Source: Asterias rubens (lineage: Eukaryota). Taken from it: a stretch of 64,000 nt of DNA. Positions within the stretch are counted from its first letter, which is position 1; each line of letters begins with the position of its first letter. The notes beneath the pieces are model-generated. The model saw only the letters and a list, made by a program, of their open reading frames with translations, searched no databases and was not told where the DNA came from. The position numbers and the translations under genes are program-made. Shown piece after piece: positions 6,173-46,440 of this stretch. The stretch is taken from NCBI RefSeq assembly GCF_902459465.1, contig NC_047081.1, forward strand, positions 2,294,001 through 2,358,000, read 5' to 3'.

Positions 6173-6551
6173 TTAAAGGCAGTGGACACTATTGGTGATT
6201 ACTCAAAATAATTATGAGTTATTCTTGATTACGAGTAATGGGGAGAGGTTGATGGTATAAAACATTGTGAGAAACAGCTCTGTCTGAAGTGACGTAGTTT
6301 TGGAGAAAGAAGTAACTTTTCACGAATTTGATTTCGAGACCTCAAGTTAAGAATTTTAGGTCTCGAAATCAAGCATCTGAAAGCACACAACTTCCTGTGA
6401 CAAGGGTATTTTTTCTTTCATTATTATCTCGCAAATTCGACGACCGATTGAGCTAAATTTTTCACAGGTTTGTTATTTTATGCATATGTTGAAATACACT
6501 AACTGTGAAGGCTAGTCTTTGACAATTACCAACAGTGTCCACTGCCTTTCT
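6173..6551 (+). mobile_element. Kolobok/T2-type MITE, family A
   Basis: TTAA-AGGCAGTGGACACTATTGG ... CCAACAGTGTCCACTGCCTTT, ~380 bp, near-identical to 8 other copies. TTAA target plus AGG termini are typical of Kolobok/T2 MITEs. Confidence 0.9.
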
Positions 6552-7235: not shown

Positions 7236-8651
7236 ATTGTGGAAAAAGTGATTCGAGTATATTCAGTACGAAACACTTCATGAATTTGATGAACTTACCT
7301 TGTGAAAAGGCCTCTGGTATTAACAAACAGTTGAGAAGACACAACGCTGTGGTTGTTGTCACTCGCCACATTGTAGTGGGGCCCGCTGCCGACGTATGTC
7401 CCATGATTCTAGCAAAGGCGGTCCGCTTCGTAAGCATTCCTCGTAAATTCAGTCCGTTTCCACATTCACCTACGATACTGCCACAGTCCAGAGCTGTTTT
7501 CACCCAAATTCCACCGAAATATAGCGTTCAGATTTAGGCACAAGCTAGTTGAAGACTTCTTCTGGCGGAATCTTCAAGAAAACCGCTGCATAATATAACA
7601 GGGGAAAACAAGAATGATTTAAATGGAAGGCCTTACTCCGTCAAAAAATAGCGTTATTTATGTTAGAGTCCCATAAAGCCTGCACACGTGCATACCCATA
7701 CGATTGCACCCAATGAATCTATGATACTACGCTCATCGCAGTGAATCGCCCGCAGCAGACGTCTGCTGTGCGTTAAGACTATACTATTCCCCCAAGAGGG
7801 GTGTCCAGAAATTTATTTGTAAACATTTCAATTAATAAACACAAAACCAACCAATGGATTTAGTTCATAAATACCTTAAACAAAGTACTCGTACAAATTA
7901 GATGTAGAAGTATTATTTTGTATTACAATATCGCGGTTTTAACCACTTAAAGCCACAAAAAATTGAGTAATAGTGTCCTCTAAGAATTTTAATGGTTTAG
8001 TCTGTGATTGTTTCAACATTGTCTAGCCACGGACACAAGGTGGCGCGCCAGGCTTGCGTCGATTATCTACGCAATTCCATCAACTAGTTTGCATAAATCA
8101 TTAACTCTCTAAAGAAAGGGGAACGCAGAATTAGCGTAACAGAAAAGGTTAATGCGACTGAGAAGTCAAGTGGATATTTTGTCGCCACTCAGCCACAATT
8201 TAAGAAGGTAAACAAATTGTTTGCAAGAGTGATTCTTATCAATCAACAATAAACGGGACAAAAGGCATTAAAAGCCCTCACATTTTAAACAGATTTAAGC
8301 CCGTGACAATATTATTCTATGTTTAAAAGCGAGGCGCAATACTTTGTTTTCGTTAAGAAGTTTTACACAGAATACTGTTGTCAAAATGCACCTATTTTCA
8401 TTAAAATAATTGTTTTTAAATATAATTGTATGCTTCAAGTTGAGGGTTCTAGCCAGGAGTTGGTATGCCCTATAAAGGATTGTCAAAACTTGCTTGAAAT
8501 TTTAAAACTTCGGGACAAAATAATTGTTCACTTACAACACATAATACATGTTGATTTTAGGCTAAATCACACATAAAACAATGTGTCAAACTTTGAAAAC
8601 AGGGTTTACTTTCTCAGAACCAAATTTGGGGGCTGAAAATTACCTATTTCT

Positions 8652-8692
8652 CTGAAACCATGGAGGAATAATTTATTCCTCCATGCTGAAAC
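8652..8692. mobile_element. 27-bp perfect palindrome between exact 7-bp direct repeats (putative transposon footprint)
   Basis: ctgaaac|catggaggaataa-t-ttattcctccatg|ctgaaac. Confidence 0.8.
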
Positions 8693-10072
8693 TAAACTAC
8701 TTCAAAGGAGCCGTTTCTAACAATGGTATTTGTAAACTATCACAAGCTCTCGAGTGTTTTCTATCAAGTAGCCTAAGTTTAACCGTTTAATTGATAAAAC
8801 TACTTCAACAATGCATGACTCAAACTCAACTTAGACAAAATGTACATTTTACAAGACAATACAAGACCAGAGTTCAAAAGATTTTTTTCTGCGAAAAATT
8901 ACAATTATTTTATGTGTCGGTGTCTTTCTGACTCAAACTAAACAAACACATTTTGAGTTATCAAAGAGCAATGATCTTTGTGGTTGACCGTTCTGTACCA
9001 ATTAAGTGATAACAAGTTCCTTTGAAGTTAAAGAATGACAACAATTTATTGTGTAAAAGTGAACGAAATCAATTAACGAAGACAAAACAGAGAATTAAAA
9101 TGAAGCGAAGCTGAGCTTCATCCAATAAACCCTGCATTAAAGGGGCGGGACAACAGTCACTCCCATTTTTTTTTTTAAACAGCTGAGACCTTCATTGAAA
9201 TCATAGCTTGTTCATTATTTGTTCCCAAAAGAAGAAAAAAGGTTCAAAATTGGTTGACCTAATGAATTTATTCGGCCACTCTGTCCCCAGTTGGGCGCTA
9301 TTTATAGTTGGGCTTTCTCGTTGTCAACCGATGGTAAACCCTAGGAATCACAACGTAACGTATCGGTTTTATATCCTCACTCTGGGGGTCGCGAGCATCG
9401 TTCCAAGATGGGCAAACTATATTCAACAAACAAAACGATCGTATTGTTGGCCTCGCCCCTTTAATTCCAGACGCCCCAATCTCTGCGCATAAATCTTTCC
9501 CCTCCTCGTTTGGCTGCGGCCTCCGCGTTAAATTTAATGGTGAGCGATAAAAAGTGGTGTTGTCCTAGAATTCCTAACCGCTGACTAAAGGGGGAGAAGG
9601 CGGCAATGTACCGCAACGTAAACAAATGCGAGCCTGTTGTACCATGGGGTAGAACCAGAACTACCACAGACCATTCCTTGCTCCCAAAGCAGTGATTGTT
9701 ACGTTTGTAAACTAATGAAAACATTTGTTTTATCAATGCTTCATGTTTTCGTCACCTGTTCAGGTTTTAAATCAGATTGCGTGAAAACGGCACCATTGTG
9801 TGATACCACCGTGGTTGTTACCCCCAGTTTCTGCTTCACTAATATTTTACGTCCGATAACTCATGCCTTCCCATACTACAAAAGTGTTTGTAAAACAGGA
9901 GGATCCGGAAGCGCACAGCTTAACTCACGTATGGCCATAGCTGGGAATCGAACCTGGGCCGATTTCAAAGATGCAATTGTAGCTGCCACGTAAAGTGTGA
10001 TGTCACAATACAATTAAATCACTACGGTAATAATGACAATTGTCTTCCGAATGCGATGATTTGTATTGCTTA

Positions 10073-10098
10073 GTGAAACCATAGAGCAAAGGTGAAAC
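10073..10098. mobile_element. One-sided 12-bp CATAGAG insert between 7-bp direct repeats
   Basis: gtgaaac|catagagcaaag|gtgaaac. Confidence 0.55.
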
Positions 10099-11099
10099 TA
10101 TGGGTAGGTTTCTAATGGTGGACTACATTGGTGAGAGAGGTAAGCAATTTTACGCACGGTGCCACACACGTCATCTGAGCCAGAGTGGACAATCTCCTTT
10201 GCAGAAAAACTTGCTCCAGCTTGGTCTACTCTTACTGATGTGTACGCTTGTTGTTGTGTAATTACTTATACTTTTTAGTGGCTCATGATAAAAAAAATGT
10301 ATGTAGGTCTACGTACATGTACTTCATCACTACTTGAGGCGCTTCACTGGTACATATTCTCTTACCAAAATAAACAACATCTATCATGTTTAATGTGTGA
10401 CTTTTTCTTCCGGTAATGTCCGTAGGTGGGAGCAAAAAAAACGACACCCATACCTGGTTTCGATTTGAAGGACATCTGGTTTACAAAAACTCGTTCCTCA
10501 ATCTGTTTAATGTAACCATATAATAATAAATAGATGTAAAACGCGTTGGAGGTCTATGGTTAGCTCCGTGGGACAAGCAACAGGTCGTGTCCTGTCAGCA
10601 GGTCGTAGACAGGGGCCCCCATTAGGGACACCTGGTCGTAAACAATGGGGGATAATCAGGCACTGTTTGCGGGCGGACATCCGCTTACGACTTCCCCCAT
10701 TTCCGTCCTAAATGAGGTAAACCGTTAGACACGTACAACCCGATGGAGCCAGCTATTCACGGGCTTATGGTCAAGCTCAAAAACCGACAGAATTTCCACG
10801 GTCCGAAACTCAAAGGAGGCTCGTTTTCAAGTAATTTTCTTTAGAGAAACTATCATTACCAAGTGTATGTTTTTACTGTTAATACCTGGTTATCTTTACT
10901 CCTGGTTAGGCCCACATGCAGCTGTATTATTGCACAGTTTAGCAGGAGGTTCCTCCGTGGAGAAAAACCTTTTCCTTTCTCCATGCGTGGAGGAACCAAC
11001 ACCCCAATTCTACGGGTAGGGCGAGTGGGAAGGATCGAGCTTTTAGCCCGGCTACCCTTGATTGAATGATACGGTGGTAGCTCGCAGTGTGGTAGTAGT

Positions 11100-11760
11100 G
11101 TGGCCATGCATGGACACATCTCAAGCAACAACAGGCCATGCGTTTTAACTTTTTCAAAAGTCTAGCCGACGGGGCCAACAAATTGTGCATTATTTTTCAT
11201 TTCCACACATAAGATGTTTTATTTAGCCCAGATTTCAAGCATGTTTTCAACCATACGTCTATTTTAAATGTAAAATATGTGACTGGTTAGGCCCATACTG
11301 CCAAGATCTGCTGGCACCAAAAGTGACCAAAACAAAACTGACCCTGTTTCCACGCAGCTCTCGCAAATCTAGGCTAAATCCATGCTCTAACCATAGGCGA
11401 ATCGATCCAGCGTGCCACCTCCCTCTGGGTTTTAGAATGACCTTTCCGTTCTCAGATGCAATTTTCGATGCAGAGGTCGGTAAATCAATGTCCATTATCT
11501 ACTTTGATATCTCGAGGGCCAATACGTCTTGGAAACGAACAGGGGACCTTATTTCTTACCCACATGCTTGCCCTGCAAACTTCAACCTGTAAGGAGCACA
11601 TATCACTTTGTTCATATTCTTCTCCCCTTCAAATTAAGTTTAAGGTTGGGAATATAACTTGATAGTTGGAAGGGTCCATGAACAATTTTGGAGAAGAGAG
11701 TGAAGTGCACAATGTTCGACCTACTTCGGTACCAGACTACACGGTGCATCATAGCATAAC
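11100..11760 (+). pseudogene. Heavily decayed CR1/L2-type LINE reverse transcriptase fragment
   Basis: Motif remnants occur in the expected order across frames: SNNRPCVLTFSKV (cf. NYRPISL..SK), LGFR, DAEVGKSMSIIYFDISRA (cf. D.G..V..IYLDFSKAF), HILLPFKLSLRLGI (cf. H..LL.KL...GI), and a weak V..TSVP. Confidence 0.45.
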
Positions 11761-12114
11761 TTTTTACAAGGGGGAAGAAAACAGAACAGGAAATAGTGCA
11801 TTGCATGACGTTGAGCACATCGTTACCTCAAAACGTGGTTGTAAAACCAAGAGCCCATTTTTAATTATGAAGTGTTAATGAGGCCCGGCCTTGTCTTCTC
11901 TCCATTGCATTGGGCTATTGGCTATATATTACAGTAATTTTGTTAGAGAGCTCTAATGACATGATGTCAGTTGTGTGTGTGACTATGCCCGTTTCTGATA
12001 ATACATTTTAGCATGTTAGAAAGTGTATATTTTTGCTATAAAATAAGGACCATGGCGACCCTGGATCCCATGCAAACATGTCACACTTCATTTATAGCTG
12101 GATGACCCAATATT

Positions 12115-12417
12115 TTATACAACCAAAACTTTTGAAATTCTCCAGTGTTGGTGGTCAGGGTTTTGTATGCCAAGGTTTTCAAGGTTCAATCGCATGCTAT
12201 GGAATGTCCCGAAGCGCTGAGCTTTAGTCCCAGTGGGTACCCGTAACAACAGACGACGCTCCACCGGCAGCCGTTTTATGATCAGATCTACGGATGGATC
12301 AGAACCAGAAGGGTCGGTGACCAGACCATGCAAGGACACAAAGTTCTGTCGGTCTCTTTTTATCATTTTGTAGCGTTGCGTTGGTTTCTGCACCCTGGAG
12401 CTAAACGGCTGATACAA
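12115..12417 (-). other. Protein-like 100-aa frame, weakly PLAT/LH2-domain-like (exon or pseudo-exon)
   Basis: NFVSLHGLVTDPSGSDPSVDLII...FGTFHSMRLNLENLGIQNPDHQHWRISKVLVV*. The pattern resembles PLAT GTD..V.I and G.L..I.L..EN.G....W.L.KV.V by eye only. A possible acceptor gttttgtatcag lies at the start. Confidence 0.25.
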
Positions 12418-15400
12418 AACAACGGTTCATTTTCTCTATGACTTAACCATGGAGCGTAATATTAACAACGTCGTTTCTATAATGGACAGTGGTCGACCCC
12501 AGATGTCACAACAAGCGAAATTACACTGTTGAGATTATGATGAAACTAAACTTATCTGGTTTGGGCTTCCCCTGGCCGATTTCTTAACACCGTTTGTTTT
12601 GTTCACGGTTCTGAATTTTTCGGTGACAAATCGTTGCTATTGACCCGCGTGTGAATCTCACGACGTTTAACCTTCGGGACAGGTTAAAGTGCGAGATTTC
12701 GTTTCCTTTACACGGTTAACGCAATGCAAAGTGCAACCCAAAAGTGTTTCCAACGAATACGCATGAGACTTCAAGGCAAAAACACCTTTGGTTTGTGCAA
12801 CCATCGTCTTATCCCTTGAAATAAATGTAGACATAGTATACAACTAATAAGCTATGCGAAATTCATTTCAAAAAGCGGTGACGTTTTTGAGACATCGCCG
12901 AAAAATGATCTTGATGTGGTTATGTCCGCGCACAAGAAGAATAATCTGTAAATGGAATTCTCAATCTTAAAAACGATTCATGTATGAAATGTTTGGTAGA
13001 TTGAATTTTATTTTCAAAGCCCTTCTCTCCAACAACATTTCTTAAAGGGAATCTTTTCTCAAAATGTTATAAAATGCATTACCACACAGCTGTATTGCTT
13101 CTCAGCGAGTAAGGTTGTTTTTATGGACATTCGTTGTTGGAGTGTTTACTGACATAAGGAACAGCAGAAGAATTTATGGAATGGTCAAGGAAGATTCTTA
13201 TAATATCAACAATCAGTAAAAAACTTTAAAAGGATTCAATTCAAGAAATGAGCCGTTTATCATCACCTCCCAGCTCATCGGTCAATTCCGGAAGCCAAAG
13301 TTCAGAGAGTTCCTTTCATTTTATGAACATTCGAGAGAGACATAAAACACATTTCAGTTTATTGTATCACTTGAATCTGGTCGTGCCATAAACAACTGTG
13401 GGTGTATAATCAAAGCGCGGGAAAACACATTAATAAATATGTCAGGTATGGGGCGCCATTTGGGTAATAAACAGGTCTTTAATGGTCCCCTTAACGTTTT
13501 GCAATATTGCCTTGAACTAGACCTGGCAATAAACAAACGTAATAAATGACGTTTTTAGTTTCATCAGATGTCTCGCGCGCAACCAAATGGCATAAATCAA
13601 AGCTACCTGATTGAGAAAATAACGAGGGAAAGGCAACTGTATCCTTTCTAATGTGGGAACAGTGTCACTTTCGATGTCTGTCCTAAAAAAAAAGTACACC
13701 ACCGTTCGCGAAACATCACCGGGGAATATTGTACACGGTTAAAATATCCCTGATTGAGAACTGCTTTACCCGCTAATAAATCTGTAAATTGTCCATATTG
13801 AACGCATCAAATTTATGTGTTTACACAATAACCAGATAAATGGGCCCATGTGGTTTGAGAAAATAGACAAATAAAAGGTGGACGTAGACTGGAAGCATTT
13901 TTTTTATTCTGGACAGTTTTTTCGATCTGAGATCGTTACAGATTGAAGGTTCTGCGACGCCTTCAACTGTCACAACAAGGGCCAGCGAGTGAGAGACACA
14001 CGACTGTTTCATGTCATTTGAAGTTCCGTTAGAGTCGGTTTTAGTCAGATAGATAGTTTAGTTTATTCTGTTTACAATCGATGCCAATGGCTAAATTACA
14101 GAAACTTACTATAACGATTTGTACAAATATAGTTAAACATGTCAATCTCTGGTTAGTTTGTAAACAAAAGCATTCTCTGTCAAACCTGAAACAGTGACAG
14201 ATTTTTACGAATGACCATTATAATTTTAAAAACTACCATTTTCGCTTGTAGCTCAACATTCACTTTTGTTATTAACTGACTTTTGCAAGATCATAAATTT
14301 AAAAGAGTAAATGAAAGAGTCGTCAGAAACACTCTCTTAATCAATCATCAGCCAAAGATGCAGGTGAAAAGTTGAAACTGCGATTAGAGAAATGCGAGTT
14401 GGGTGTATCAGTATATACGCTAGTGTCCATTTCAATTTTCTAATCACACAAACAGGAAAAAGTAGACGGTAATTAGCCAACCTCGTTCCCCGATGAATCC
14501 ATAATCGCAAGATGACTTCAAAAATGGCGTCACTCGCTGGCAAGTCATACCACGACTTATGATATGATGGGACTAATGAAATTGTCAGAATATTCTTTGT
14601 TTTAATAGACTCTCAAATTAGCGATCATACAGCGGGTATAAAGTACAGAAGACCATAGCTTAACCACGGTCTAAACAGACGAATTGTTCATTATGGAGAG
14701 GCCTTTACAACAGGTGTCCAGCGGCATGCAGTTAACACATTTTGATAGCGCAAAATGACTACACCTCGAACGAAATTGTACTCATAACTGGAGAAACCCT
14801 TGGTGTGTGTTTGGCAAGAAGTTGATCTGTGACCTCAAGGTCAAAATGAGAGGATATCTGATTGTTGACCTTTACACAGTGAATTGTTATTGTTAATGGG
14901 AAGCACTTAGCTCTCTGGCCTGCCCACTTGGCCACTACCCACGGGGTCAAGATGGTGCTTGATGGGACTGATCAACATTAATACTGAAATTAAGACTGAG
15001 AGTGTAAACTTTAGACTGTTGGAGTGTGTCCAACCATGTCCAACAAAGGAACCGCTGAAGACAATAAACATAAATATCCCTTACCAGAGGGTACCAACCT
15101 ATACAAACAACAGTTCTTGACACACAAAGTAATAGTAAGACTTATTGAAAGTTTACAAGTAGCTATATTACAAAGTAGCTATTACTTTGAAAACACCTGA
15201 ACTCGGCTGAAAACAGTTTTCTTTCTAATTCTGAATGAAGCTACCTTAGCCTCTAATTGAAATAATTTTCTTCTATTGACAGAGATAAACTTGACACCAT
15301 TAAATCACGTGAATCGAACGATCCTTGAATAAAACTTGGGCCATATCTGAAAGACTTAGAACATTTAGAATGCAGCGGTATCTATTTGTAACAACTGGAG

Positions 15401-17515: not shown

Positions 17516-17899
17516 AAATACACTGGACATTATTGGTAATTGTCAAAGACTAGTCTTCTCACTTGGTTTATCTCAACATATGCATAAAATAACAATCCTG
17601 TGAGAATTTAAGCTCATTTGGTCGTCGAAGTTGCGAGATAATAATGTAAGAAAAAACACCCTTGTCACACGAAGTTGTGTGCGTTTAGATGGTTGATTTC
17701 GAGACCTCAAATTCTAAATCTGAGGTCTCGAAATCAAATTCGTGGAAAATCACTTCTTTCTCGAAAACTATGGCACTTCAGAGGAAGCCATTTCGTACAA
17801 TGTTTTTTACAACCAACCTCTCCCCATTACTCGTTACAGAGTTAGGTTTTATGCTAATAATTATTTTGAGTAATTACCAATAGTGTCCACTGCCTTTAA
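17516..17899 (-). mobile_element. Kolobok/T2-type MITE, family A
   Basis: Decayed left end cactggacattattggtaattgtcaaagac; right end ccaatagtgtccactgcct-ttaa; perfect internal hairpin at ~17694-17738. Confidence 0.9.
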
Positions 17900-18088: not shown

Positions 18089-18150
18089 ATACAACCACAG
18101 GGTGAGTGATACAACCATAGAAAGGCCCGGTCCTTTCTCTATGATACAAC
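18089..18150. mobile_element. Two adjacent CAYAG micro-inserts separated and flanked by the same 7-bp repeat
   Basis: atacaac|cacagggtgagtg|atacaac|catagaaaggcccggtcctttctctatg|atacaac. Confidence 0.75.
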
Positions 18151-26030: not shown

Positions 26031-26371
26031 TTCCGTCATTACCGGAATAAAGTCAACAGAGGGCGTGCCGAATGCAAACAGCTGTTAGTTTGGGAGGGCG
26101 ACATTAATCAGTTTGAAAATGACTTGCTGGATTGGGTTACATAGGACTGCGTAACTTGTAGTGACTTTACGATGTGATTGAAAACAAGAAAATGAACGGA
26201 AACGCAAGCTGCGACTTACTTCCACTGTCATTCTTAGAATAGAGTAAACTGGGACCCAACAACTGTTACTTTAAATTAATAGTTAGCTTCAGCTGTAGTT
26301 GTTTAGGTCTTGCATTGGATGACTGTAGGTTTGCTTCCCAAGTCTATACTCCAAAATAAAACACTGAAAAT

Positions 26372-26738
26372 TTAAGGCAGTGGACACTATTGGTAATTAC
26401 TCAAAATGATTATCATCATAAAACCTTTCTTGATTGTAAGTAATGGGGAGAGGTTGACAGTATAAAACATTGTGAGAAACAGCTCCCTCTGAAGTGAAGT
26501 AATTTTCCACGAGTTTGATTTCAAGACCTCAAGTTTAGAATTTGAGGTCTCGAAATCAAGTATCAGAAAGCACACAACTTTGTGTGACAAGGGTGTTTTT
26601 TCTTTCATTATTATCTCGCAACTTTGACGACCGATTGAGCTCAAATTTTCACAGGTTTTTTATTTTATGCATATGTTGAGATACACCAACTGTGAAGACT
26701 TATCTTTGACAATTACCAATAGTGTCCACTGTTTTTAA
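26372..26738 (+). mobile_element. Kolobok/T2-type MITE, family A
   Basis: ttaaggcagtggacactattggtaattac ... ccaatagtgtccactgttt-ttaa. Confidence 0.9.
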
Positions 26739-26766
26739 AAGTACACTGTTTTATAGTCACGTATAG

Positions 26767-27157
26767 TTAAAGGCAGTGGTCACTATTGGTAAATGTCAAA
26801 GACCAATCTTCTCAATTGGTGTATCTCAACATACGCTCAAAATAACAAACCTGTGAAAATTTGAATGAGCTCAATTGGTCGTCGGAGTTGCGAGATAACT
26901 ATGAAAGAAAAAAACACCCTTGTCACACCAAGTTGTGTGATTTCAGATGCTTGATTTCGAGACCTCAAATTCTAAACTTGATGTCTCGAAATCAAATTCG
27001 TGGAAAATTACTTGTTTCTCGAAAACTATGGCACTTCAGAGGTAGCCATTTCTCACAGTGTTTTATACCATCAACCTCTCCCTATTACTCGTCACCAAGA
27101 AAAGTTTTACGCTAATAATAAATTTGAGTAATTACCAATAGTGTACACTGCCTTTAA
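26767..27157 (-). mobile_element. Kolobok/T2-type MITE, family A
   Basis: ttaa-aggcagtggtcactattggtaaatgtc ... ccaatagtgtacactgcct-ttaa. Confidence 0.9.
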
Positions 27158-28005
27158 TCAGAAAGGTTGGTTGCATTTTGTTATAGCATTTTAATACAGT
27201 ACTGCAGCCCAGGATCTCATCCAGTGAAAACAGACATAATCTTTAAATCTCAAATTTTCCAAAGCAAAACATTTAGAGAAAACGGTTATCTACGTATGGT
27301 TATTGATAAACCCTACAGTGTTTGCTGGTAGTTTACTGCCGTTTATTTACAGGCCCCCAAACCAGCCTTAAAAATAATAGTAATAAAAGCCAAGTGCCAA
27401 ATCCGCCCGGTTCCGACGACGGGTATAAAAAAAATCCAAGATTTTTATCTGACCCAAAATTTTGCCTGGCGGTATTTTTATTTTGATGTTAAACAATCTC
27501 GACAGTTCCTGATCATCACTAGGATCAATAAAGCTGCTTTAAACATTGGATATTATCCGCTAGATCCATCAGGCGTGTTCCAGTACACGAACCCCAGTGT
27601 TTTCCAGGCCCTCCCGCGGGCCTAGCTTAGGCTCCTAGAGACAAAACCGCGCCATCCAAATTCTCTCAACTACAGGGTCACGTGTGCCGTTTTTCTCTCT
27701 TCAGACGGGCGGCATTGTGGGAGCGGATGCTTGTACTGCTTCGGATGCCTGCCGTTTTAGCCTCAACATCAAAGCCAGTTGAGGCGCGAAAATCCATTAT
27801 CTCGTCCGGATTATCGAACATGTTTTTGTGACACTATTGAGCAAAGAAGCCCGCGGGTTTCCAAACCACTTGGCCTGAATCTGAGCCACAGTGTTGAGGA
27901 GAATATTTTTTTTTAAATTGTCCTCATCAAAAGTTCAACTGGCTTGTTTTCTGTTCTAGAGAGTTATGGTTACCATAGACAACAATTCTACCAACGAGGA
28001 CCATT

Positions 28006-28396
28006 TTAAAGACAAGTGGACACTATTAGTAATTGTCAAAGACCAGTCTTCTCACTTGGTGTATCTCAACATATGCATAAAATAACAAACCTGTGAAAAT
28101 TTGAACTTGATTGGTCGTCGGAGTTGCGAGATATCTATGAAAGAAAAAACACCCTTGTCACACGAAGTTGTGTGCTTTCAGATGCTTGATTTCGAGACCT
28201 CAAATTCTAAACTTGGGGTCTCGAAATCGAAATCGTGGAAAATTACTTCTTCCTACCTCGAAAACTACGTTACTCCAGAGGGAGCCGTTTTTCACAATGT
28301 TTTTTACTATCAACCTCTCCCCATTACCCGTTACCAAGTGAGGTTTTATGCTGATAATTAGTTTGAGTATCTGCCAATAGTGTCCACTGCCTTTAA
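28006..28396 (-). mobile_element. Kolobok/T2-type MITE, family A
   Basis: ttaa-agacaagtggacactattagtaattgtc ... ccaatagtgtccactgcct-ttaa. Confidence 0.9.
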
Positions 28397-29893: not shown

Positions 29894-30139
29894 CTACGTT
29901 AGGATGATTATGTATGTAGCCAGAATGTTTCAAGAATTCTAGACGTTTGAGTTGGTAGTGATTTTTTCAGGTTCGGTATGAGTTGGTGCTGGTTGCGATC
30001 ATGATAGCGTGCTGACAGAGAGGAAACACAGTTAATGTAAACGGTTGACTAATGCACCTAGGTCAAATCTTATGGTGAAGATCACATCCATTATTTTTAT
30101 TTTATGGCTATTATGAAACTGAGTAAACACAAGCCCCCA

Positions 30140-30680
30140 GGGAGAGCAGCCATGTTTTATATCACTCAATATGCATATTGTCAATAATTTGTGACGTGTT
30201 TTGTTACTGTGTAATAAAGACCGACTTGAAAATTAAAGACACTGCTACAGATCGAGACATTGTGACGTGTTTCTGTGTCTCTTGTACATATTTAATTTCT
30301 AGTTATTTATTATTATTTGCTTTAGAATTGTTTCTGTATAATTTTATGCACTTTAGATTTTGTTGCATTTTAATGGACTGTAAAATTCTCACAATTGTTC
30401 TTTTTTGGGGGGTTCTATCAGAGTATGGAATAAACGTATTATTGAATTGAATTGAATTGAAAAGAGTGAAGTTAAAAAGCACTAGATACAAAATGGAGAT
30501 ATCAAACCGACCTCGTTCCCAGGACGGAACCATGGAGAGCCGCCATGTTTTATTTCACTCATCATGCAGATTGCAGAGAATCTGTGACGTATTGATTACC
30601 GTGTAAAGAGTGAAATTAAAAGCACTGCAGATCCAAAATGGAGATATCGAATCGACCTCGTTCCCAGAACGGAACCTAAT
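30140..30680 (+). repeat. Tandem repeat, period 144 bp, interrupted by a LINE-like 3' end with (ATTGA)n tail (~30270-30460)
   Basis: gagtgaa.ttaaaagcact..agat.caaaatggagatatc.aa.cgacctcgttcccag.acggaacc at 30464 and 30608. The ggagag.cgccatgtttta block occurs at ~30141 and ~30535. Confidence 0.75.
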
Positions 30681-39952: not shown

Positions 39953-40109
39953 NNNNNNNNNNNNNNNNNNNNNNNNNNNNNNNNNNNNNNNNNNNNNNNN
40001 NNNNNNNNNNNNNNNNNNNNNNNNNNNNNNNNNNNNNNNNNNNNNNNNNNNNNNNNNNNNNNNNNNNNNNNNNNNNNNNNNNNNNNNNNNNNNNNNNNNN
40101 NNNNNNNNN
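39953..40109. other. Assembly gap (157 N)
   Basis: N run. Confidence 1.
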
Positions 40110-40243: not shown

Positions 40244-40405
40244 NNNNNNNNNNNNNNNNNNNNNNNNNNNNNNNNNNNNNNNNNNNNNNNNNNNNNNNNN
40301 NNNNNNNNNNNNNNNNNNNNNNNNNNNNNNNNNNNNNNNNNNNNNNNNNNNNNNNNNNNNNNNNNNNNNNNNNNNNNNNNNNNNNNNNNNNNNNNNNNNN
40401 NNNNN
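40244..40405. other. Assembly gap (162 N)
   Basis: N run. Confidence 1.
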
Positions 40406-41754: not shown

Positions 41755-41895
41755 GTACTGTTACTCAGTACTTCCTGGAGCTCGCACGCATATTACTAGG
41801 GTGGGATTTGAACCCACGACCTTTGCAGTTCTAGAGCACTGTCTTACCAACTAGACCACCGAGATTGCCCGGTAACTACATGAAGTTCGAATCCC
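41755..41895 (-). mobile_element. tRNA-derived SINE
   Basis: Minus strand gggcaatctcggTGGTCTAGTTGGtaagacagtgctctagaactgcaaaggtcgtgGGTTCAAATCCcaccc has Pol III A and B boxes and a tRNA-like head without a clean acceptor stem. Confidence 0.75.
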
Positions 41896-43480: not shown

Positions 43481-43866
43481 TTAAAGACAATGAACACTTA
43501 TTGGTAATTGTCAAAGGCCAGTCTTCTCACTTTGTGTATCTCAACATATGCACAAAATAACCAACCTATGAAAATTTGAGCTCAATTGGTCGTCGAAGTT
43601 GCGAGATAATAATGAAAGAAAAAACACCCTTGTCACACAGGTGTGTGCGTTTAGATGGTTGATTTCGAGACATCAAGTTCTAAATCTGAGGTCTCGAATT
43701 CAAATTCGTGGAAAATTACTTCTTTCTCAAAAACTATGGCACTTCAGAGGGTGCCGTTTCTTACAATGTTTTATACCACCAATCTCTCCCCATAACTCGT
43801 TTACCAAGTAAGGTTTTATGCTAAAAATTATGTTGAGTAATTACCAATAGTGTCCACTGCCTTTAA
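43481..43866 (-). mobile_element. Kolobok/T2-type MITE, family A
   Basis: ttaa-agacaatgaacacttattggtaattgtc ... ccaatagtgtccactgcct-ttaa. Confidence 0.9.
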
Positions 43867-45525: not shown

Positions 45526-46440
45526 TTATCAGTAGATCGATGCAGGTCACACCTCACATTTCAACGGTAAACGTTTTCTCTATCAGTTGCAATGGTTTGA
45601 TAAAATTGTACCTTTAAAATCGTACCTTAAAGGTAGTGGACACTATTGGTAATTACTCAAAATAATAGTTATTATAAAACCTTTATTGACTACGAGTAAT
45701 AGGGAGAGGTTGATAGTATAAAACATTGTGCGAAACAGCTCCCTCTGAAGTGGCATAGTTTTCGAGAAAGAAGTAATTTTCCATAAATTTGATTTCGAAA
45801 ACCTCAAGTTTAGTATTTGAGGTCTTGAAATCAAGCATCTGGAAGCACACAACTTCGTGTGACCATGGAGCGACAAGAGTGTTTTTTCTTGTAACTTCGA
45901 CGACCAATTGAGCTAAAATTTGCACAGGTTTGTTATTTTATGCACATGTTGAGATACACCAAGTGAGAAGACTGGTCTTTGACAATAACCAATAGTGTCA
46001 CACTGTCTTTAAACATGATACCTAATGGTATCTTTGAAATTGCACATAACAATTGCACTGAACAAAGGCCCAAGAGGGTTATAAGTAGATCTATGCAGGT
46101 CACATCTCACATTGTAACGGCAAAGTAATGCACTAGTGAATCACCATTGGAAGTGTATGAGAAATGGTACCTTTAAAATGGTACCAAAATGGTATCTTTG
46201 AAAGTGTACATAACAAGAGCACTGTTGCGATGTAGGATTAATTATGAGGGTTATCAGTAACTCGATGCAGGTTACATCTCACATTTGAAGGGTCAACGTA
46301 TGCACTGGTGCATTAGTACCATTGAGAAAAGGTACCTTTAAATTAGTACCTTTAAAATGGTATCTTGAAAACGGTACATAATGATATTTTTGAAACTTTA
46401 CATAACAATGGTACTGTTGCAATGTAGAATAATTAATGAT
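45526..46440 (+). repeat. Three-copy ~171-bp tandem array; first unit split by a MITE
   Basis: ttat.agta.atc.atgcaggt.aca.ctcacatt starts at 45526, 46079 and 46251. Confidence 0.8.
45627..46012 (+). mobile_element. Kolobok/T2-type MITE, family A, carrying an 11-bp CATGGAGC insert
   Basis: ttaa-aggtagtggacactattgg ... ccaatagtgtcacactgtct-ttaa; extra catggagcgac at 45864-45874. Confidence 0.9.

Follow-up and report, generated by a model that had tools for sequence, protein, structure and literature searches.

A 27-bp palindrome between 7-bp target duplications in a sea-star genome, a probable excision footprint of a P-type transposon

We analyzed a 64,000-nucleotide stretch of the Asterias rubens genome (hereafter the window), which is repeat-rich and contains no long open reading frames and no Pfam matches; its two N runs (39953-40109 and 40244-40405) were left out of the analysis. 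Within it, a 27-bp palindrome lies between two copies of CTGAAAC (Table 1), and the perfect 13 + 1 + 13 bp arrangement described in the original prediction is exact in the sequence. Extension by even one base breaks both the direct repeat and the palindrome, and a rough estimate of the chance of finding 13-bp arms together with a 7-bp repeat in 64 kb is ~6e-8. Thirty-eight short palindromes (arms of at least 8, loop of at most 12) were found in the window; a flanking direct repeat of more than 3 bp accompanies one of the 38, the palindrome at 8659, and there it measures exactly 7. The palindrome is unrelated to the sequence that flanks it. As single-stranded DNA it is predicted to fold into a 12-bp hairpin (z = -6.5); a functional RNA was considered and rejected, with no Rfam match and a stem of just 12 bp.

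Table 1 Coordinates of the palindrome locus, the other sites of the same design and a MITE family in the window.
Feature	Coordinates	Strand	Remark
Left target duplication, CTGAAAC	8652..8658	.	X6 empty site with a single copy, CTAAAAC
27-bp perfect palindrome, CATGGAGGAATAA-T-TTATTCCTCCATG, 13+1+13, CATGG...CCATG	8659..8685	.	Absent from X6 orthologous contig
Right target duplication, CTGAAAC	8686..8692	.
One-sided scar, GTGAAAC / CATAGAGCAAAG / GTGAAAC, left end only	10073..10098	.	Inside tRNA-derived SINE-like repeat
One-sided scar, CGTGGAG / AAAAACC + TTTTCCTTTCTCCATG / CGTGGAG, left end lost	10956..10992	.
Double scar, ATACAAC / CACAGGGTGAGTG (13 bp) / ATACAAC / CATAGAAAGG..TCCTTTCTCTATG (28 bp) / ATACAAC	18089..18150	.
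GTGTGAC + 11 inserted bases (CATGGAGC + GAC)	45857..45874	.	Inside TTAA-flanked MITE copy
MITE copies	45627-46013, 6173-6549, 17516-17899, 26371-26739, 26767-27157		~385-bp TTAA family
MITE copies, further	28005-28396, 43481-43866, 52221-52609, 58833-59217		~385-bp TTAA family

Logan contigs from four public runs were compared with window positions 8000-13900. One run (X1), from the same species as the window and possibly from the source individual, carries the 8659 palindrome. Another (X6) represents a related species, with approximately 4-9% differences over the aligned pieces. Contig 24 of X6 (2,581 bp, at a single-copy depth of 19.5) was collinear with the window on both flanks, and window positions 8640-8688 were represented in it by 16 letters (AATACCTCTTTCTCTA), followed by AAACTAAAC... 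These 16 letters aligned base for base to the window minus 34 bp, with one 7-mer, CTAAAAC. Since the X6 site has no palindrome and a single 7-mer, the 34 bp are an insertion with target duplication in the window's lineage. An orthologous empty site without a single copy of the 7-mer had been named beforehand as evidence against the prediction, and the X6 site holds exactly one copy. Among the scars, this outgroup comparison concerned the 8652 locus only.

The palindrome is present in many copies. At position 8669, the summed contig depth, a rough measure of copy number only, was 17,927 in X1 against ~150 for single-copy sequence (~120x) and 899 in X6 against 19.5. Matches to the palindrome ended at 8655 and 8692. 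Consensus agreement in the loose flanks was ~0.5 around the palindrome, which we took as about the level of unrelated sequence, versus 0.74-0.79 for the true repeat at 9974-10013. The high depth combined with disagreeing flanks places the palindrome at an order of a hundred independent loci. Those copies that could be placed share a similar 7-mer; ascertainment accounts for part of this, since a match of 27 bp by itself is probably too short for contig placement. A 28-bp variant with an extra A after 8669, forming a perfect 14 + 14 palindrome, made up 20-31% of the depth in 4/4 runs.

Polymerase-theta repair is able to make short inverted and direct duplications (PMC2895639), and a structure of this kind might be ascribed to a repair or replication artefact (snap-back synthesis or templated insertion) or to chance. 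However, the palindrome was not copied from its flanks, its chance probability is that estimated above, the same end motif returns at independent loci with repeats of exactly 7 bp, and the palindrome occupies ~100 loci. We regard an origin without a transposon as highly improbable and as effectively refuted already by recurrence and copy number.

Five more sites of the same design occur in the window, including one-sided and eroded forms. The inserts at the six sites measure 27, 28, 13, 12, 23, and 11 bp, all at most 34 bp, and exact 7-bp repeats are present at 8652, 18089/18109/18144, 10073, and 10956. The recurrence predicted at 18116 was found as ATACAAC, a 28-bp imperfect palindrome and ATACAAC, and the adjoining partial form at 18096 as two ATACAAC separated by 13 bp of the form CAC...GTG, with three 7-mers overall. 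The 28-bp insert reads CATAGAAAGG CCCGG TCCTTTCTCTATG; its right arm implies an end CATAGAGAAAGGA, and the whole may correspond to a 30-bp perfect palindrome on the end CATAGAGAAAGGACCGG, minus 2 bp and with one substitution. Likewise, GTGAAAC, CATAGAGCAAAG and GTGAAAC follow one another at the partial form expected at 10080. The site at 10956-10992, absent from the earlier list, has a 23-bp insert ending TCCTTTCTCCATG, the right end of which matches CATRGAGAAAGGA at 13/13 positions. For the partial form at 45864, 11 extra bases stand after GTGTGAC that are missing from the eight sister MITE copies in the window, in which GTGTGAC is directly followed by AAGGGTG. The sister copies without the insert make 45857-45874 a proven insertion and provide an internal empty-site control. 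The remaining form, at 2596, is a candidate only: AAC followed by CATGGAG is present and the second 7-mer is not, the region being bracketed instead by a 10-bp repeat (CATCCTTCAA).

Further structures with similar ends were seen in the window. A 31-bp palindrome at 915-945, CACGGAGGCAA-CAGAGGCGA-TTGCCTCCATG, has the same kind of end (CATGGAGG) between the dissimilar flanks GATACTT and CCCCGTA; this palindrome without a duplication counts against the footprint model, which leaves it unexplained. An ends-out arrangement at 12418-12470 consists of AACAACG, 16 nt ending CTCTATG, ACTTAAC, 16 nt starting CATGGAGCG, and AACAACG. It keeps approximately 16-17 nt on each side, and X6 contig 29 shows that the related species has it too, with no large indel. 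In appearance it resembles a junction at which two neighbouring elements meet (right end, shared 7-mer, left end); its outer AACAACG repeat may be due to chance.

Three candidates were rejected. AACCATGGAG at 30528 belongs to an unrelated repeat unit and was discarded as a false positive. In this area, a mosaic of two short repeat units extends over 30137-30214, 30458-30531, 30530-30606, and 30602-30676; the unit that mimics a scar begins CATGGAGAGCCGCCATG, and its paralogue reads CAGGGAGAGCAGCCATG. At 60702, AATGGAGGAATAATTT matches the end at 15/16 positions and was dropped as evidence for an inverted repeat past position 13, because a local repeat lies there and its paralogue reads differently. 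An outer 9-bp inverted repeat at 10944-10997 was at chance level by a rough estimate.

Both the end motif and the design far exceeded the shuffled expectation, which had been proposed as a check. With up to one mismatch, CATRGAGRAA had 37 matches against 16.9 +/- 4.1 in shuffles, and AACCATRGAG had five against 0.23 expected. Relative to Markov shuffles, 7-mer repeats enclosing an insert that starts with CATRG were found five times (mean 0.5), and those with an insert ending in CYATG five times (mean 0.44). The five duplications agreed with GTTNAAC at 19/30 specified positions (p = 5e-5 against random 7-mers of the window), and the GTTNAAC-like target preference suggested earlier equals the published motif of the 1360 element (PMC3276498). 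The match is lopsided, with 13/15 positions in the AAC half versus 6/15 in the GTT half (n = 5). Between 8652 and 45874, the duplications ending in AAC or GAC are all on the + strand and none appears as GTT on that strand, whereas the window as a whole contains AAC (1290) and GTT (1295) equally often. Such a one-strand AAC bias is not expected of a symmetric transposase and counts against the explanation preferred below, though n = 5.

P elements of Drosophila offer the closest comparison. Their transposase makes a staggered break: one cut falls on the 3' strand, at the edge of the element, and the second on the opposite strand, 17 nt into the inverted repeat, so that the chromosomal flanks retain 17-nt 3' tails of the element (PMC7776569). 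Chan et al. sequenced repaired donor sites after excision of P{wa} (PMC2895639, Table 1) and obtained, between 8-bp duplications, a 30-bp perfect palindrome joined at AT, CATGATGAAATAAC(AT)GTTATTTCATCATG, 14 times and a 32-bp palindrome joined at TA five times, besides 17+17 blunt joins, one-end-only junctions, deletions into the duplication and templated filler. One fly junction thus recurs in independent events, which is the kind of recurrence needed for a hundred identical palindromes (PMC2895639). Each class of junction in the window has its counterpart there: the layout of duplication, both inverted-repeat termini head to head, and duplication; perfect palindromes from pairing at a short self-complementary stretch; and the minor classes, namely junctions with one end only, losses reaching into the duplication, and filler. 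The Drosophila P end, CATGATGAAATAACATA (PMC2895639), begins with CATG, as do the sea-star ends, and its first 13 nt match the sea-star end at 10/13 positions (CATGATGAAATAA versus CATGGAGGAATAA). By contrast, the P duplication is 8 bp rather than 7 bp, and the fly junctions came from a laboratory cross whereas the sea-star scars are high-copy germline variants in a wild echinoderm genome.

The duplication length agrees with other members of the superfamily, being 7 bp in 1360 and Galileo and 8 bp in P (PMC3276498, PMC3698922). In 1360 (Hoppel/ProtoP), the target motif GTTNAAC (PMC3276498, Table 4) matches GTGAAAC, CTGAAAC, ATACAAC, and GTGTGAC of the sea star; the likeness concerns the duplications, and 1360 and Galileo are insect elements whereas the host here is an echinoderm. 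Excision footprints of either element were not found in PMC3276498 and PMC3698922. P elements are prone to double insertion at a single site, with the duplication shared between the two copies (PMC5932611), and the three ATACAAC with two inserts at 18089-18150 fit such an event. A deuterostome P-type element, zebrafish Pdre2 / THAP9, has 13-bp terminal inverted repeats and P-type excision but an 8-bp duplication, according to excerpts of PMC10983969, which describe no footprints of these elements. Our literature search found experimental P footprints in flies and did not find fixed P-type scars, or their abundance, in echinoderms.

We consider the structure at 8652-8692 to be probably (roughly 0.65) an inert excision footprint of a transposon of P-superfamily type, as originally predicted; the empty site in X6, the shuffles, the match to GTTNAAC and the architecture of the fly junctions argue for it. 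The ends CATGGAG.../...CTCCATG and CATAGAG.../...CTCTATG show the 5'-CA...TG-3' termini of the P superfamily, the exact 7-bp repeats fall within its 7-8 bp target duplications, and a palindromic target motif (GTTNAAC in 1360; GTCCGGAC in P) is present, in lopsided form. The insertion with its target duplication, the many copies, the recurrence in full and partial forms and the match to the target motif are shown, and the excision step, the long stagger and the P-type enzyme are inferred from them. The differing terminal sequences are the one observation that suggests several P-like families, as had been proposed.

In the mechanism we propose, a P-type cut-and-paste element with ends 5'-CATRGAG...CTCYATG-3' would have inserted at CTGAAAC, duplicating 7 bp. 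A transposase would later have excised it by staggered cuts, severing the transferred strand where the element meets the host DNA and its partner deep within the inverted repeat (17 nt in Drosophila P); each chromosomal flank would thereby retain a single-stranded 3' tail of the transposon end. The two identical tails may then pair at an A/T-rich self-complementary part (AAATTT, AATT or AT) before ligation, yielding two stretches of 13-14 nt, one from each end, between the duplications, a scar that would be inert today. Because the pairing would be set by the tail sequence, each excision would tend to give the same 27/28-bp palindrome, hence ~100 near-identical copies with unrelated flanks. 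Tails of one putative family (A), CATGGAGGAATAAAT(TT), could pair at AT, AATT or AAATTT and would in each case give the same 28-mer; with 17-nt tails, 17 + 17 - 6 = 28. The odd length of the 27-mer would call for slippage by one base within the A3T3 run or for two ends that differ slightly; the majority 27-bp form is not producible by perfect pairing of identical tails, which counts against the mechanism. The 13-14 nt kept per end at 8659, and six inserts of at most 34 bp, are compatible with at most 17 nt per end; since any palindrome fits some stagger, the 27/28 bp alone are no proof of 17 nt.

Long elements with these ends had been proposed as a further check; searches for such a parent, made within the window, gave no elements of 35-8000 bp with the scar ends, and no CATRG...CYATG ends with matching 7-mers up to 15 kb apart, under either exact or relaxed matching. 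None of the 11 open reading frames of at least 110 aa in the window, screened for a transposase, had a Pfam match. With no parent element found in this search, the P assignment rests on analogy. An exact scan for the palindrome in JGI metagenome and IMG/VR contigs returned 0 matches, a zero that is uninformative because these collections probably hold no sea-star DNA.

The same end-to-end layout would also arise by interrupted gap repair, already named in the original prediction, if copying from the sister chromatid stopped after ~13 nt per side and the ends were joined, leaving a maximally deleted element; in wild-type flies, P{wa} excision most often ends in incomplete repair synthesis and subsequent end joining (PMC2895639). 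Such repair predicts, however, a continuous range of lengths up to hundreds of bp, as against six inserts of at most 34 bp and none of 35-8000 bp in the window, and it gives no reason to expect one 27/28-bp product throughout ~100 loci. We therefore regard it as unlikely: where excision scars and minimal deletion derivatives had been offered side by side, the scars are supported, and the absence of 35-8000-bp forms together with the uniform product disfavours the deletion derivatives.

Copy number and presence/absence are explained equally well if the 27/28-bp palindrome, with bare 13-14-bp ends and no spacer, is itself a self-mobile unit that a P-type enzyme mobilises in trans with 7-bp duplications of its own. 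As expected for a mobile element, the source species has ~100 near-identical copies whose flanks are unrelated and the related species ~46, and the 8652 locus is occupied in just one of the two, an outcome that is the same for a 27-bp insertion as for a larger insertion plus excision. Inverted-repeat ends, a target duplication, many dispersed copies and presence/absence between species are all found here as in MITEs, whereas the partial sea-star forms point to repair products; to our knowledge, 27-28 bp without internal sequence is far under the size of any known MITE. The spacerless 13-14-bp ends could hardly be paired in one complex, and the one-sided or eroded forms at 10073, 10956, and 45857 read as products of repair, not of insertion. 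Moreover, the unit has no room for the internal transposase-binding sites used by P elements (PMC7776569), and independent fly excisions give identical junctions too, one of them 14 times (PMC2895639). Mobility of so short a unit thus seems improbable; if it were real, every other mobile element known from animals would be far larger.

The superfamily call draws on duplication length, ends, target motif and footprint shape only, and the window search linked no transposase to the scar ends, so that the footprint might instead stem from a non-P cut-and-paste family with 7-bp duplications and long staggered cuts. Excision of hAT and Transib elements leaves hairpin-derived flank palindromes with 8- or 5-bp duplications, Tc1/mariner footprints are 2-3 nt with TA, and piggyBac excision is seamless at TTAA; these marks all differ from the sea-star scars. 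At 8652, the palindromic nucleotides of host flanks and the 8- or 5-bp duplication that characterize hAT, Transib and RAG-type events were not found. In addition, retention of as many as 17 nt from each end is known for P alone (PMC7776569, PMC2895639), and the target motif equals that of 1360 (PMC3276498). We give a non-P source a low probability.

It is well supported that the sea-star scars are a natural record of a mechanism already known from fly P footprints. If footprints, they make the sea-star genome a natural record of cutting by a deuterostome P-type transposase. Measurements of so long a stagger exist for the Drosophila P element only, and scars keeping 13-17 nt per end would, if this reading is true, mean that the stagger is old and common to the superfamily. 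The sites also represent a class of hairpin-forming indels of 20-40 bp that is abundant and has escaped annotation, with six in the 64-kb window and about a hundred copies of one palindrome; these indels differ between closely related species, sit in introns and other repeats and are too short for repeat annotators. Such scars would allow past excisions to be counted beside surviving insertions, a history that is normally invisible.

Several neighbouring repeats were also characterized. The 10073 scar is contained in a ~250-bp block at 9961-10210, tRNA-derived and SINE-like (GGGAATCGAACC box), which was present in one X6 contig and missing from another (depths 14.9 and 12.5) and is probably a segregating insertion in the related species. 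Positions 9974-10013 within it are of extremely high copy number (depth ~19,850 versus 150 in X1). A TTAA-flanked MITE of ~385 bp, with the termini AGGCAGTGGACACTATTGG.../...CCAATAGTGTCCACTG and a hairpin of 17-bp arms in its interior, occurs in ten copies in 64 kb that are ~80% alike, and it probably belongs to a TTAA-targeting family of Kolobok or piggyBac type. On the - strand, 41793-41865 gave an Rfam tRNA match of 42.8 bits and no ARAGORN call, and is probably a tRNA-derived repeat or pseudogene.
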